A stretch of 64,000 bases of DNA from Geosiphon pyriformis uo1 (lineage: Eukaryota; Fungi; Glomeromycota), in contig JAAOMT010000620.1 in assembly GCA_016748015.1 (NCBI GenBank), forward strand, positions 36,940-100,939, read 5' to 3'. The notes under the pieces are model-generated. The model was not told the origin of the DNA. It searched no databases and saw only the letters and a program-made list of their open reading frames with translations. This document shows, one piece after another, positions 27,902-35,500 of this stretch. Made by a program: the position numbers and the translations under genes. Position 1 is the first letter of the stretch. Every line of letters starts with the position of its first letter.

Positions 27902-29217
27902 TAGCTGTTTTCTCTATTAGATGGACAATATCTTCCTTTAATTTGACAAGTTTGTGGTCTTGGTTTTTGATTTTCTATGGCTTTATTTATACTAATTTCT
28001 GCCTTGGTTCGTCGCCCTCGACTATTTCTTCCCTTATTAAATAATTGCTAAAAAAAAATAGCTTGCGTATTTGTATTTATTTGACTGTTTCTTTTGTGTC
28101 GTTGGCTTTTCGATTTAGAATTGCGTACTTTTAGTAATTTCGGTGGTTGGTATAAGAAAACTTGGCTAATTAGGAAGTATTTAAAGCCTTTGCAATAACA
28201 GTGTTTTTTCTAATAAAAAAAAATAAAAAAAAAGTTAATTTCTTTTCAGCTTTTCTGCGTTGTTAAATATGACTGATTTGTTATATTGCATTGTTCATTC
28301 CTTTTCTAACTTTAACGCTTGTTAAGGCTATTTTTAATCGTCTAATGGCGGCTTTGATGGTCCTAATACTTGATATTCTGTAGAATATTGGTAATTGCCG
28401 AACTTGTTTAGCTCGGTTTTTTCTCCTGTATGGCTTTATAGTTTTTAATCATGATTTTATTTATTACCTTCCTTTTCTTTTTTTGCCTTCTTTAATAATA
28501 AAGAATATATCAACTAAAAGGCATATGCTTATAGTAATCAACTTCTCACAGCTTCTATTCACTAAATAATAAATGATTGCTAATAATAAAACGTTTCGAT
28601 CATGACTAAAATATCAAAACTATTATTTTTTATTGTTGTGATAAATTTATATTTTAATCTTTGCTGCGTTTTTATATTAATCAAGAATATTTAAAACATT
28701 TAATATTGATTATTTTGATTTAGGCAGAGATCTCTAAAAAAATAAGAAAATAATTGATTTAGGTTTTTAAAATTGTGAAGCAGTTTTTATTATGCTATAT
28801 TTACTTTATCATAACTCAATTAAATAGAAAAAACAACAATAAGACAAAATCAATATCAAAAGAAATTGATTTAAGAATTACACTAAATTTTTAATTAACT
28901 GAATTCGATAAAAAATTAATTATTTAATTTTATATCTTAACTAACAAAGTTTACAGTTATAAAATATTAAATTATTTAATTAATAATAATTTCTGAGAAA
29001 GTGAATTAGAAAAATATCTCTCAATAATTTTAACTATTTATTTTTTGTAAATATATGAAAGTATGTGTAAATGAGTTAATAATAGATATTAAAAAGTAAT
29101 TTCATGATAATTTTTGGTTTCAATTTCAATTAATAACATCACCAAAAATTTTTATTAATTGATTAATTCAAGAATTTTATCAATTTTAATAGCTAATAAG
29201 TTATAAAATGTTTATGA

Positions 29218-29385
29218 CATGGGTTTGGAATTTGATCCGACCCGATTTCAACCCGTTCTGACCTGACCTTAGAGAAAGACAAGCTTCGTAAGTATTTTTA
29301 CTTGAAGTCAAAAAAAAATTAGTATATTTTCGAATCCGTATCTGACCCGAGTATATTAATTGGATTGTAGGTCGTGTCGGGTTGG
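29218..29385. mobile_element. Possible hAT-like non-autonomous relic with GACCCG subterminal motifs
   Basis: Clustered (G)ACCCG/CGGGT motifs in both orientations (gatccgacccga, aacccg, tgacccga, gtcgggtt) in AT-rich context. TIR and TSD not resolved. Confidence 0.35.
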
Positions 29386-29964
29386 CAATTTGAAAAAATT
29401 AAACAATTAAAATTAAATTCAGTTAATATGGTCACATAATTGGTATGCGTATAGAATTCTTTATTCAATTTCTGGTCTAGAATGAGTCAATTTTTTGGTT
29501 TGTTCTGTTAAATTTTAAGTAATGGTGAAAGATTTTCTTTACTAACGAAACCGGTAGTTGTAAGAAAATCTGATAGAAAGATTTTGAGAAAAAAGAATTT
29601 GTGGTTCTTGACAAGTTTTAATTTAATAACAACAAATTTATCAGATCTTTGGTAAAATTAATTACATTATGTAAAACAAGTCGAAATTTAAAAATTTTAG
29701 ATGAATAATTAAATACAAGATTATTATCTATATAATTTGGTTGCGAATAGTCACGATAGGTTTAACTTTGAGTTCATTATTAATGGCTAGTTAATGATTT
29801 AAAGAGTTCAATTTGGATGTCAACTAATTTGAATAAAGTCCTGACGTTTTCCTGAGATTTTGATCAGAAACTTTCACGAATTTCGATTCGGTGAAAAGTT
29901 TACGCACAAAGAATAATGGCGGTGTCAAGAAAAGTGACTTCTCAATAACAATACTCTACAAATT

Positions 29965-30096
29965 TTACATAATAGAGCATTGTCCGGTACCGCTACCATC
30001 GTCTGGGTCACCGGTTGGTCCTTTAATAGAGCCGTTTCCAGGAGCAATTATTGATAAAGGATTGAATGAAGATTGATTGTTGGTTGTTGGTTGCAT
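29965..30096 (-). CDS. 43-aa CaaX-terminated peptide, candidate a-factor-like lipopeptide pheromone precursor (MQPTTNNQSSFNPLSIIAPGNGSIKGPTGDPDDGSGTGQCSIM)
   Basis: Manually translated intact ORF (ATG 30096, TAA 29965) with an A-rich start context (aaagaaaATG), C-terminal CSIM, upstream TATAAAA and five retained CpGs. Ungapped similarity to S. cerevisiae Mfa1. Confidence 0.7.
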   Translation of the reverse strand: MQPTTNNQSSFNPLSIIAPGNGSIKGPTGDPDDGSGTGQCSIM

Positions 30097-30216
30097 TTTC
30101 TTTAAGTTTTTTGATTGATTTACTTTGAATGTTGTTATAGTTTTTTTCTTTTCTTTTCTTTTCTTTTAGTTGTTTTAGTTTGATTGAATGAAAAGAAATT
30201 GGGAGAGCACAACCAA

Positions 30217-30223
30217 TTTTATA
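30217..30223 (-). promoter_or_regulatory. TATA box (TATAAAA) of the CaaX peptide gene
   Basis: TATAAAA ~120 nt upstream of the ATG, followed by a pyrimidine-rich then A-rich 5'-UTR-like tract. Confidence 0.5.
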
Positions 30224-30264
30224 GAAAAAATTCATAGCCTTCATATTAACACCTGTCATTAAAC

Positions 30265-30622
30265 ACAATGTAAATTGAAACAGAATGTTAAAAACCAAGA
30301 TTTTTGACAATAACCGATATAATTTATTGTTCTATTTTAATTAATAATTCGGCAGACCCCCATTGTTAAGCTATCCAAACAATGTCTAAAATGCAAATAA
30401 TATTCAAAATTTAATTTAATTTAATCATTATCAGTGGAATAGAGCAGACGGAGCATTGTTTTTTGATATCATCTTAACTAGTACATTCATTTTCAAATTC
30501 AGCCATTAAGGAGATTTATTAAGTGTTTATGGGGTATCTGTGAATTAATTAACAATGCTAAAAACAGGTTTTTTTTAAGCATGTGGGACATTGTTGTACG
30601 AAGAATATATATACGAACAATG
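30265..30622. promoter_or_regulatory. Cluster of HMG-box-type sites (AACAATG/CATTGTT x6) plus one TGAAACA (Ste12 PRE consensus)
   Basis: CATTGTT at 30361, 30454, 30589; AACAATG at 30378, 30551, 30616; ACAATG at 30265; ATTGTT at 30326; TGAAACA at 30276. Confidence 0.55.
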
Positions 30623-30689
30623 CTAAAAAGTATTACTCTAAAGTTACGATTATCCAATTTCTGTTAATAATTGTGCTATGGACAAATAT

Positions 30690-30716
30690 TTCATGATTCA
30701 TGATTCATGATTCATG
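30690..30716. repeat. (TTCATGA) x ~4 tandem heptamer
   Basis: Direct reading. Confidence 0.85.
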
Positions 30717-31459
30717 TTCCAAGGTTTATAATAGGGTATTGTTTTGAAGCAATACCTTTTATGCAAACTCATCGATTTTTGAGCTAGCCAATAAAATATT
30801 TCTAAGAAAATTTTTAAAAAATTAAATGAGGTTTGAAATTTCGATCTAATGAAAAACCTTAATAAATCACTCTATTGATTCAAGAAAAATTTTCTACATA
30901 ATTATTTTCCACTACTATGGGTAATTTTTTAAGTATGTTTGTAATAGTATTTTATTTTATATTTGACTACCACTTTGTGCTTGAATATCTGTTTTAGTTT
31001 GAAATAATTATTGGTAATTCTTAGCTATTTTTGGTTGCAAATGAGAATTGACTATAGTAAATAGAGCAAGCTCGGGAATATCCAAAGTTCAATTTACAGT
31101 TTATCAATTCCAAAGATATGTTTGCCTTGTTTATCCCTTAGAGGTTGCATAAAAATTACCAAGTTTTGAAACGTAATTTTGGTACACCCCATAAAGACCA
31201 AGGGCTTTTTTTGAATTATTTTGGTAAATCAAAGATTTTATTTATAAGATATTTTAATTAATCTGTTTCAAGTTTGCTACATTTGAAAATTAAAGAAACA
31301 ACTGAATATCTTTCTACATTAGTATTAAAAGATTTAAATATTGTGTCACTATTTTTATATACAATTAATTACTATTGAATAGTTTGAAGTTATGTCAACT
31401 TGAATTACAACTTAATTCCAGTTTGTCTGACTAAATAAATAATAAATTTTTAACTTTAC

Positions 31460-31570
31460 AATTTTTATCTCACTCTGGTTTTAGGACCAGGTAAACACCT
31501 TTACTGAACGTCGTAATTTTTATCCCACTTTAGTTTTAGAACCAAGGTAAACCACCTTCACTGAACGTCG
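31460..31570. repeat. Two-copy ~55-57-bp tandem duplication overlapping the 3' end of the 59-aa ORF
   Basis: aatttttatctcactctggttttaggaccaggtaaacacctttactgaacgtcg / aatttttatcccactttagttttagaaccaaggtaaaccaccttcactgaacgtcg. Confidence 0.85.
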
Positions 31571-31715
31571 ATAATTGGCTTTGGTTCGTTTCATTTGGAG
31601 TATTCATTTGATAAGTTTGCGAAGGTTTTAATGGCTTCCTAGTATTTTCTCTTCCTTCAAACGTTTTGAAGATCAAAGCGGTTTGATTTCTTAAAGTGGT
31701 ATTGATTTGATGCAT
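31536..31715 (-). CDS. 59-aa small ORF (MHQINTTLRNQTALIFKTFEGRENTRKPLKPSQTYQMNTPNETNQSQLSTFSEGGLPWF), function unknown
   Basis: Intact ORF with aatcaaaATG context, TATAAAA at 31819-31825, six retained CpGs and four AACAATG/CATTGTT sites upstream. Confidence 0.45.
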   Translation of the reverse strand: MHQINTTLRNQTALIFKTFEGRENTRKPLKPSQTYQMNTPNETNQSQLSTFSEGGLPWF

Positions 31716-31818
31716 TTTGATTCTTAGTTTTTCGATAAAGTGAACTCAGATTGCGATTTTTGTCTTTGAGAGATGAGAGGTGTTGAAATTTAAAAAAGTG
31801 GCAAAGACCTCAGGTGAG

Positions 31819-32434
31819 TTTTATAAAGAAAATAACAATTGTAAAATATTTTTCTATTTTCCAGAAATAAAAAGTAAAGCTTTCATTGTTCTTCTATAGA
31901 TATAATGGTAAACTAAATACAGTGTTACAAATTGTATTATAGCTTTCAATTTAATCTTGATATTTGTAAATTTCATTTTTTAGTGTGACAATTTTCGATT
32001 TTGAATGGCTCATCATGTCCAACTGAAAAAAAAATGGTTTCTACAATTTTTACATTTTATTTTTAATGAAAACCTTATTTTAAACAATGATTCCACTTTT
32101 AATCTTGATTTGAATTTAAAAGCTTGTTAAAAACAAAAAAAACTTTCAGAAATCTAAAGTAGAATGTGCAACATAGATTTCAAACTAGGCATTGTTCTTC
32201 AGGGACCTTAATATTATATCATGTTCTTGTGACGCTATGTCTAACGTGCCACTTGTATACTAAAGAAATTTTCAAAGGATATGAGAGTTCGATAAATTTT
32301 TAAATGTAGTTTTAAGGCATGCAATTGAAAACCCATTAAACGTATTGTGTTATCTAGTAGTCAGCTTTATTTCCTATTGTGTCTATTCATTAGAAGCTTC
32401 AAAATATTTGCCTTTATTATTTTAATTAACAATG
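31819..32434 (-). promoter_or_regulatory. TATA box and HMG-box-type sites upstream of the 59-aa ORF
   Basis: TATAAAA at 31825-31819 (minus); CATTGTT at 31884 and 32190; AACAATG at 32083 and 32428. Confidence 0.4.
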
Positions 32435-32476
32435 TGTCCCACTCTGAAATTTAAGAATGGCATATTTTTAATTGGC

Positions 32477-32477
<1 letters not shown>

Positions 32478-32513
<36 letters not shown>
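32478..32513. repeat. (TAA)n microsatellite
   Basis: Direct reading. Confidence 0.9.
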
Positions 32514-35500
32514 TTTAGGCCTTTGTCACAAAATAAAGACCTAAAATGCTTGCAAGCGAGATTCGAGAAGGGGATTTTGAAATCTTTATAGTCAGACCTT
32601 AATGACTAGCCTCGTATTAAAATTGCTTTTTAATCTTTAAAGTTTGATTATTGCAAAAATATTTTTGTAGTTACTGTGTGTGTGAAAAAAATTAACGAAC
32701 AACAGGCAAAAATTACCACACATAAAGCTTTTTCCTTTTTATCCAATCTAGATACATGTAAAAGCCCTATGTCATAGACTTCATTTTCATTATTTCAAGA
32801 TAGAAAAGCTTAATTTGAATGAAGATTTGGTAAGCTTTCAAAATTTTGCTCGTGCATCCATATATTTTTTAATTCAAATCTAAATTTCAATTCTGCTATT
32901 ACTTTCTGTATTTTACAATCATTGATGGAGTGGCGACAATGAAATAGATAACCCTTTATTGTAGAGTATATTTGCAGCAGTTAATAGACTACATTTAAAC
33001 CTAAATTGTTGACAATTTTTTGCTTTACATACCAGCAAATATTTTTGTGGTTGCTAAAAATCTGTGGTCTTTAGAACATGATAATTTTTCATTTCTCTAT
33101 TTTTTTGATACTTGTTAATTAAGCAGCATGTTGTTGTGAAATTACATCCAAGCATTTTTGCGATTTAGCAGGATTTATGGTTTTCAAGTATGTCAAAATC
33201 TTCCCTTTTTTAAGTAGGTGTCATTTTTTTACACAAAAATATTATTATGTTGAAGAGTCATAGAAAGTAACCCAAATTTCAAGTTTATTTCTCAAAAAAG
33301 TGAGAAAACTTGATATCTTAAAAGTGATTACACATGCAAATTACATTTTAGTTTTTGTGAGTACTGTAGATAAAACTTTTTAGATTTTCCGAGAAATGAA
33401 AGATTAATTTTATTAGTAGGTTTGTAAAATTTAACATATTTCACTATGTATATAATTTCATAATGGATAAATAGCATAATGTTTTTCTAAAATAAATTTT
33501 GTCAAATATTTTATTTTATACATTAAAATGCTGTAAAAAATTTAAAAAAAGGTATTTAATTTGGAAATTGTAAAAATATTTAGTTACCTTTTCTTTAATT
33601 ATTCAATTAGTTTGACCAAATGTTGAGACGAATCATCCCATCAAATGTTAGGCGGTTTAATTGAAAAAAGATAATCTAACATGGGTTTGAAGCGATTACT
33701 CTAATTTCGAAGATTGTTCTAGACTAAATTTTTAATTTATCCCTTTTTGAGTTAGACACAATAAATTTGTTTATTTTTTATCCCAGATTTAAAGAATTAA
33801 TGAAAATAATAATAAAATAGTATAAAATTCTAATATTTTTAAGAAAATTGATACATTGGCTAATGTAAATATATAAATTAAAGTCATAAAGTTTTCGAAT
33901 AGACTTGGAATTATGGTTTACCAAAGCGGTTTGAACAGATATTATTTCATTGAATAAGATTTTCAGTATAATTAATTTACAAAACTAGAATTAATACTTT
34001 TTATAGCCTCATGATTAATATGTTTTGTTTTGAATTCTACTAACTTTTGCTTCGTATCAACTAGTTTTTTTGTAAATAATTAATTTTATCATTCCGAGTT
34101 TGACTAAGAAAGATCAATTTATTTCTAGACCTGAAGAACTTTTTATTTAAAATGCTTCGACTTAAATGTTCTATACCTTTTCATATAAAGAGATAGCAGA
34201 ATTTATTGTTTCAAAATGAATTATAACAGAAATTGTGCATAACGTTATGGCATTTTTAAATGAAAAGAAATTTTCAAACTTCAAGATCAAAATCAAAAAT
34301 TTTGAACCAAGCTCCTCTCATATTTCAGAACTTGAATGTTAATAAACTTGGTGGAAATTATATTCTACGCTTCGATATACTTAATTCTTTGTTCGAGTAA
34401 ATTTTACTGGTTGTTTTATTAACTGTTTTAAATATATAAAAAATAAATGTAATTCAATAAAAATTAATAAAATATATTTTTTAAATAAAAAACAAGACTT
34501 TTGTATTTATATCACCTTTATAAATTATTTAAAAGATTTAAAGTTTAGAATCTCTCCTTAAACAATAAAAAAAATAAATTCAACAGTGAAAATATTTAGT
34601 TATAATTATTAAAAAACTTATTTATAAATATATTAAGCTTCATTTATAACATAGTATATTTTTTTTATATAAATATAAAAAACTATTTTAGCTTTACAAA
34701 TTTACAAAATTTATTTAAGCTCTTTAATTTAGCTTTTTGGAGTTTTTTAATAAAGTTATAATATATTTAAGCCACTTTAACATTAAAATAAATTAATACG
34801 AAGAATAATAAAAATACATATAAGAATTATACTGTGATTTAGTTTATATAAAATTTGTAATATATGCAATATAAACCCTTAAAATTTTTAACAGCTTGGC
34901 TTTTTTTAATTATTAAGTAAAAAAAGTTGTAAGATTTTTAATGTTTTTTGTAAAAATATACAGCATTTAATGCATGATTATTACAAACAGGCTGCTATAA
35001 TGTTTGGATATTAAGAAACATTAGAAATATAAATTGAAATAAGTATGGTGTTGATTAAAATTCCAGAAATATAGATTAATTCTTTTAACACTAAATTTTC
35101 TAAAAAAAAGAATTCATAATTTTTAAAAATGTTGGTAAATTTAATAAAAAAGTTAATTAAAATTCAGAAAATATGAACAGTTAGAATAATTTATAACAGT
35201 AAGTACTAATTATTGTATAATAAATGCTAAAATTTTTTTAAGCTTCAATACTGATAGACTACTTAAATAGCTTTGTTTATAGAATTATAAATAGAAAATT
35301 AATAGAACTTTATAACTATAAGAAAAGATTTTCTAATACTTTTGCTATTATATTGAAAATTAAGATAATTTTGGCTATAATTTCATAATAACAACAATTT
35401 ATTAATTTATGTTTTTAATAAATAATAAAAGATTATAAAGATTGTGAATACACTATTTTCTAACCATTACACAAGTCTTTAAAAAAATGTGTTTTGCCAA

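Follow-up and report, generated by a model that had tools for sequence, protein, structure and literature searches.

A dense cluster of AACAATG/CATTGTT words precedes a small CaaX peptide gene of Geosiphon pyriformis, and with a probability of about 0.65 it represents the upstream activating region of this gene, made up of conserved sites at which a sequence-specific HMG-box protein (MATA-HMG/SOX type) would bind. It is very likely that the words function as cis-elements for the CaaX peptide genes, with HMG-box proteins as their most probable binders. That such a protein activates the gene by binding to them, and that the peptide serves as a pheromone, are inferences. The initial annotation had read the cluster as regulatory sites of the CaaX gene together with a Ste12 element, and of this interpretation the cis-elements could be retained whereas the Ste12 element had to be given up.

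The gene is located at 29965–30096 on the minus strand of the window, as we call the whole stretch of 64,000 nucleotides analysed here, and its translation gives a CaaX peptide of 43 codons (stop included) ending with CSIM. Copies of it are annotated at NCBI as Geosiphon pyriformis hypothetical proteins. A TATAAA box on the same strand (30218–30223) lies at −127 to −122 from the ATG and is found at the same place in 32 of 33 promoters of the gene family described below. The neighbours of the gene in the window are an ML-domain protein, kinase fragments and a LINE-like element, and an HMG-box gene is present neither within the 64 kb nor beside the CaaX genes of Ambispora. No RNA family was found in an Rfam search of 29000–33000. 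Further upstream we noticed a 55-bp unit repeated 2.1 times (31460–31576, 1.4 kb upstream of the CaaX gene) and a (TAA)12 tract (32477–32513), both of which suggest no function. The contigs of the only public run containing this stretch (X1) span just 29731–30132, which corresponds to the coding sequence, a part of the leader and a trailer of about 230 nt, with no coverage of the promoter, and the contigs of paralogues part from each other immediately 3' of the stop codon. These contigs look like transcripts, and as the RNA nature of the run is a guess they hint only weakly at an expression of the CaaX gene. The neighbourhood of the gene (28233–32793) has a 96.7% identical twin of 4.5 kb on contig C469 (L026, G000:C469:43000–47554), being either a recent segmental duplication or the second haplotype that was assembled apart.

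By direct word search of the window we found the six exact 7-mers that had been claimed, with CATTGTT starting at 30361, 30454 and 30589 and AACAATG at 30378, 30551 and 30616. The words at 30361 and 30378 form the described inverted pair CATTGTT-N10-AACAATG, and the near-sites ACAATG at 30265 and ATTGTT at 30326 as well as a TGAAACA word at 30276 could also be located. All six exact words match the HMG-type core WWCAAWG / AACAAT(G). The cluster lies about 265–526 bp upstream of the ATG (30096, minus strand), and its six sites, at −271 to −526, about 140–400 bp upstream of the TATAAA box. They are all kept in the C469 twin, which is uninformative because of the high identity of the two regions. 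Four additional AACAATG/CATTGTT words at 31884–32434, 1.8–2.3 kb upstream of the CaaX gene, were rejected as part of the element, since two of them (32083 and 32190) are mutated even in this twin, and they are probably unconstrained.

Over the whole 64-kb window 20 AACAATG/CATTGTT words were counted and 19.6 are expected from dinucleotide shuffles, so the word is of ordinary frequency in the window and yet strongly clustered at 30361–30622. This lack of an overall enrichment is what one would expect if the cluster were a chance product of AT-rich intergenic DNA, an explanation that is refuted by statistics and recurrence and is left with practically no probability. The expectation per 262 bp (λ) is 0.082, near the value of ~0.06 estimated in the initial annotation, and the local probability of finding at least six words is 3.9 × 10−10, so that only ~0.001 chance clusters of such density are expected in the 128-Mb genome. 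The maximum per 262 bp was 1–4 words when the window was simulated 300 times with a first-order Markov model, and furthermore the cluster is met again in paralogues and in a second genus.

A DNA search of the genome yielded 38 CaaX-gene matches beyond the locus in the window, many of them in arrays on the contigs C729, C578, C551 and C622, and 33 intact copies were extracted as family sample (family size at least 33). As the gene family is this large, the promoter becomes a natural experiment: among the 33 copies the peptide is nearly invariant and third codon positions are variable. AACAATG/CATTGTT occurs at −400 to −100 in 28 of the 33 promoters, and with 70 sites in the 9.9 kb of this zone it is the commonest 7-mer there, ranking above A/T runs. 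The mean number of words per promoter is 2.12 in this zone, 0.12 at −1200 to −900 and 0.00 downstream, and across the 266 kb of sequence that we examined the density is 4.0/kb up to 600 bp upstream of the genes versus 0.49/kb elsewhere. In total the family carries 80 sites with an invariant core, which are mostly located 50–200 bp upstream of the TATA box, and the conserved half-site extends to CTWAACAATG.

The family also allowed us to follow the ancestry of each site. The near-site ACAATG at 30265–30270 is the homologue of the family's most conserved proximal ATTGTTT site, whose consensus AATATTGTTTC shows 0–2 parsimony changes per column, and the C469 twin has an exact AACAATG in its place. 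The inverted pair (30361–30384) is the core conserved element throughout the family, and 18 of 33 copies have it in exact form (CATTGTT-N10/N11-AACAATG), located at −176 to −290; across the copies its spacer varies at most positions with both heptamers intact, and its right half-site again shows 0–2 parsimony changes per column. Within the sub-family nearest to the window copy the pair is retained in 11/11 copies, in two of them in the TATTGTT form. The single site at 30454–30460 (−364), reading AACAATG in gene orientation, is homologous to the distal site of the family at about −300 and is kept in the C469, C700 and C788 copies and, as AGAACAATGAC, in array copies; the C551 copies show variants such as AATAATG. 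For the site at 30551–30557 (−461) the homologue is the CATTGT(A) site of the family at about −340, with the flank CCTGTTT..G-CATTGT being common across the family and the core CATTGT present in most copies. Of the two outermost sites, the one at 30589–30595 (−499) is lineage-specific, being shared by no copies other than that of the window and the C469 twin, and the one at 30616–30622 (−526) appears as CATTGTT in 6/11 sub-family copies (C778, C469, C700, two on C551, and C657).

In the alignment of the 33 copies the mean pairwise identity is 0.84 for the motif columns versus 0.65 for the remaining columns of the promoter upstream of TATA (window permutation p = 0.005), with third codon positions scoring 0.73. 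Counting parsimony changes on a FastTree topology gave 2.24 per column for the motif, 4.18 for the other promoter columns (p = 0.012) and 3.44 for third codon positions. Moreover, both copies with a decayed peptide (6 and 8 replacements) are devoid of sites (Fisher p = 0.019). The strength of these conservation tests is moderate, and common ancestry of the paralogues and possible gene conversion in the arrays may inflate the apparent conservation.

An exhaustive protein search led to mis-annotated relatives from two species of Ambispora, A. leptoticha and A. gerdemannii, whose contigs (L048, L049) hold five intact genes of 39–43 codons ending with CVIM or CIIW. In the public annotation these peptide genes are spliced beyond the CaaX stop or fused into a 790-aa model. 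Coding sequences of the two genera are 71–78% identical and their promoters align just in short, weak patches. Conservation in related promoters had been proposed as a check of the cluster, and an unbiased word count in the five Ambispora promoters (−350 to −100) indeed put AACAATG on top of 914 7-mers and ACAATG on top of the 6-mers. The 7-mer occurs 8 times in these 1250 bp versus 6 times in the remaining 35 kb (p = 1.5 × 10−10) and is present in 5/5 promoters, lying 59–194 bp before a TATAAA box whose own position is −114 to −138 in 5/5, as in Geosiphon. Between the genera, word and zone are conserved but not a fixed architecture, as the arrangement of the sites differs. One longer sequence, AATTAATATTGTTT, is common to the A. 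gerdemannii promoter (L049:8120–8140) and the Geosiphon consensus at about −150 (window 30260–30275), and its distance from the TATA box is similar in A. gerdemannii and in the Geosiphon family. Its AATTAAT part looks like a homeodomain-type word adjoining the HMG-type word. The distance to the TATA box, the two column tests and the Ambispora promoters together place the words in the promoter with a conservation beyond the neutral level, and the claim that they are selected cis-elements of the CaaX gene is supported by the recurrence in 28/33 promoters, the slower change and the enrichment in Ambispora.

How frequent such clusters are in the background was assessed by pattern censuses and in the 266 kb of sequence. 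The inverted-pair pattern is found at 34 places genome-wide versus 5 for the reversed control, and of these pairs the CaaX family accounts for 19 and a single dispersed repeat family for 14, which leaves 1 orphan. This only pair outside the two families (L047:2031–2055, G000:C541:49431) lies about 640 bp 3' of an HMG-box gene (L047:2697–3563, 288 aa, motif IPNAYIIYR), which is part of a cluster of about ten HMG-box hits (C541:19–86 kb). Mixed-orientation triples (AACAATG, CATTGTT, AACAATG with gaps of 2–32) occur 11 times versus 0 in the control, 5 of them in or beside CaaX arrays (4 in promoters of intact copies, 1 orphan on C551) and 6 in the repeat family. The C551 orphan is a triple of exact sites between array members (L016:592–647, G000:C551:51592–51647), with neither a CaaX ORF nor another evident small gene beside it. 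Triples in the same orientation showed no enrichment (63 versus 50 in the control) and derive mostly from Asn-rich coding repeats; such runs are encoded by Asn/Gly-rich repeats (AAC AAT GGT ...), for example at C568:669285–669642 and C580:221121–308862. We therefore discarded a ranking by plain AACAATG density as uninformative; applied naively it would have such Asn/Gly-rich runs at its top and would mislead, because a transposon-like family and Asn-rich coding repeats carry clusters too.

The repeat family (L033–L046) shares at least 2.3 kb of homology, possesses a gag-like CCHC ORF (L033:889–1227) and contains 40-bp tandem units of the form CATTGCT-N3-CATTGCT-G-AGCAATG (e.g. L033:1880–2110), variants of which yield up to five exact AACAATG/CATTGTT words in 130 bp. 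It might be exploiting the same or a related factor. According to the initial annotation the regulatory reading would fall if similar clusters were common in random intergenic or transposon-derived DNA, and this is partly the case, as similar clusters exist in this one family and in the Asn-rich coding repeats; they are periodic there, however, whereas the cluster of the CaaX promoter is aperiodic and is not explained by them. An origin as a relic of repeat or transposon DNA, copied together with the gene and without regulatory function, would agree with the related words in the L033–L046 family, which supplies 14 of the 34 genome-wide pairs, and with the spacer of two array copies, which reads ATTGCT as in this repeat. 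We nevertheless regard such an origin as very improbable, as no tandem or dispersed repeat was found under the cluster (30100–30750), where periodic units are missing and to which L033–L046 is a separate sequence. Furthermore, conservation of the sites exceeds the neutral proxy and their spacers diverge, the sites are limited to a zone 50–200 bp upstream of the TATA box, and AACAATG is enriched before Ambispora genes with unalignable promoters.

The TGAAACA word at 30276–30282 (plus strand) had been taken as a Ste12 pheromone response element. It is present in just 4/33 family promoters, and the family consensus at this position is TGAAGCA within the box AACATTCTGCTTCA, from which the word in the window is one substitution away. 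In Ambispora TGAAACA occurs in 3/5 promoters, which with p = 5.8 × 10−4, uncorrected for 914 words, is not significant. Since the family does not conserve the word, a Ste12/Tec1-type reading of CATTCTGTTTCA (30276–30290) was rejected, and we judge the Ste12-like word to be nonfunctional as such.

Concerning possible binders, the Geosiphon genome contains at least 121 HMG-box hits (PF00505) above the Pfam cut-off, many of them in tandem clusters. One HMG-box gene that we inspected encodes the motif IPNAYIIYR, and the Asn in motifs of this type is as in sequence-specific HMG boxes. A search of PDB sequences with one Geosiphon HMG-box protein gave only weak hits to SSRP1/HMGB. The HMG identity of the presumed binder is read solely from the AACAATG word. 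The words might also be selected but bound by a non-HMG factor, or jointly with a homeodomain protein at AATTAAT-type words, and this we consider unlikely, though clearly less so than an origin from repeats. The evidence from conservation is silent on the identity of the binder, the conserved half-site CTWAACAATG is longer than the core, and AATTAAT precedes the proximal site both in the family consensus and in A. gerdemannii. On the other hand AACAATG is the textbook core of SRY, SOX and MATA-HMG proteins, fitting WWCAAWG exactly, and we know of no other factor family with this specificity; the flanks of the sites also lack a match to the forkhead core TAAACA. The tolerated variants AACAATA and CATTGTA also fit the degeneracy of the Schizosaccharomyces pombe M-box (PMC1693924).

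Returning to an HMG-box factor as the preferred binder, the sites 50–400 bp upstream of the TATA box would act as the upstream activating region of the CaaX gene. Its core would be the inverted pair CATTGTT-N10-AACAATG with a start-to-start distance of 17 bp or ~1.6 helical turns, a spacing at which two HMG domains or a dimer could bind and bend the DNA. The flanking single sites would add occupancy in a billboard fashion, as number, spacing and orientation of the sites vary between copies and genera.

AMF and their relatives possess a Ste3-type receptor, a Ste6-type exporter and a hugely expanded HMG-box family. By Halary et al. no pheromone gene was found in this group (PMC3834313). A tentative and rather doubtful extension of our model is that the Archaeosporales (Geosiphon, Ambispora) keep a Dikarya-like mating circuit, in which one MATA-HMG protein, or a few out of the many, would turn on dozens of genes for lipopeptide pheromones through AACAATG sites, depending on mating type or partner. 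If this were true, the logic leading from HMG protein to CaaX pheromone would predate the split of Glomeromycotina and Dikarya, and a DNA target would for the first time be at hand for the expanded HMG family of this lineage, in which sex has never been observed. The CaaX promoters tie a candidate pheromone family to a candidate class of regulators by a short and defined word, and therefore the proposed link is directly testable. In addition, a mixed-orientation pair located before a TATA box can serve as a search key for other genes of the same regulon.

Several known systems resemble the one proposed here. As for SOX and SRY proteins, AACAATG fits the WWCAAWG consensus, and inverted paired sites suggest cooperative or dimeric binding. 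SoxE dimers bind palindromes with opposite facing sites and a spacer of 3–4 bp, whereas the Geosiphon pair CATTGTT-N10/11-AACAATG has the other orientation and a longer spacer. Closest in context is S. pombe, where the HMG protein Mat1-Mc binds to the M-box ACAAT(G/A) in front of the M-factor genes mfm1-3 and other M-specific genes; the box is found 130–190 bp upstream of the ATG (−133 to −192 in mfm2 and mfm3) and reads AAACAATGGG in mfm2 (PMC1693924). The likeness consists in the ACAAT(G/A) core being located upstream of farnesylated CaaX pheromone genes there and of a CaaX peptide gene here, which is a putative lipopeptide pheromone gene. Spacing is similar too, with paired sites ~1.5 helical turns apart in S. 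pombe (PMC1693924) and ~1.6 in the Geosiphon pair. The composition of the element differs, as S. pombe combines one M-box with an adjacent weak Ste11 TR-box AACAAAG(A) and Geosiphon has two to six AACAATG-type sites including the N10 pair. The Ste11/TCF-type word AACAAAG is found in 0/33 promoters at −400 to −100 and is absent from 30200–30700, and no Ste11 box AACAAAG(A) follows 14–26 bp downstream of the M-box-like sites; thus the two-factor composite of S. pombe is not reproduced. In the Saccharomycotina including Candida albicans the HMG protein Mata2 directly binds to and activates each a-specific gene, which is regarded as the ancestral scheme (bioRxiv 10.1101/565234). The similarity to the scheme proposed here would be that of an HMG-domain mating regulator acting directly on the regulatory region of its target gene, although in a very distant lineage, and the Candida-type a2 site is a composite with an Mcm1 site. 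In a full-text literature search we found no DNA target described for HMG-box proteins of AMF. Among the AMF themselves, SexM-like HMG genes of Rhizophagus rise when two isolates meet (PMC7490403), and the tandem HMG-box clusters of Geosiphon resemble those reported for Rhizophagus; the cluster upstream of the CaaX gene is a candidate target of the expanded AMF MATA-HMG family.
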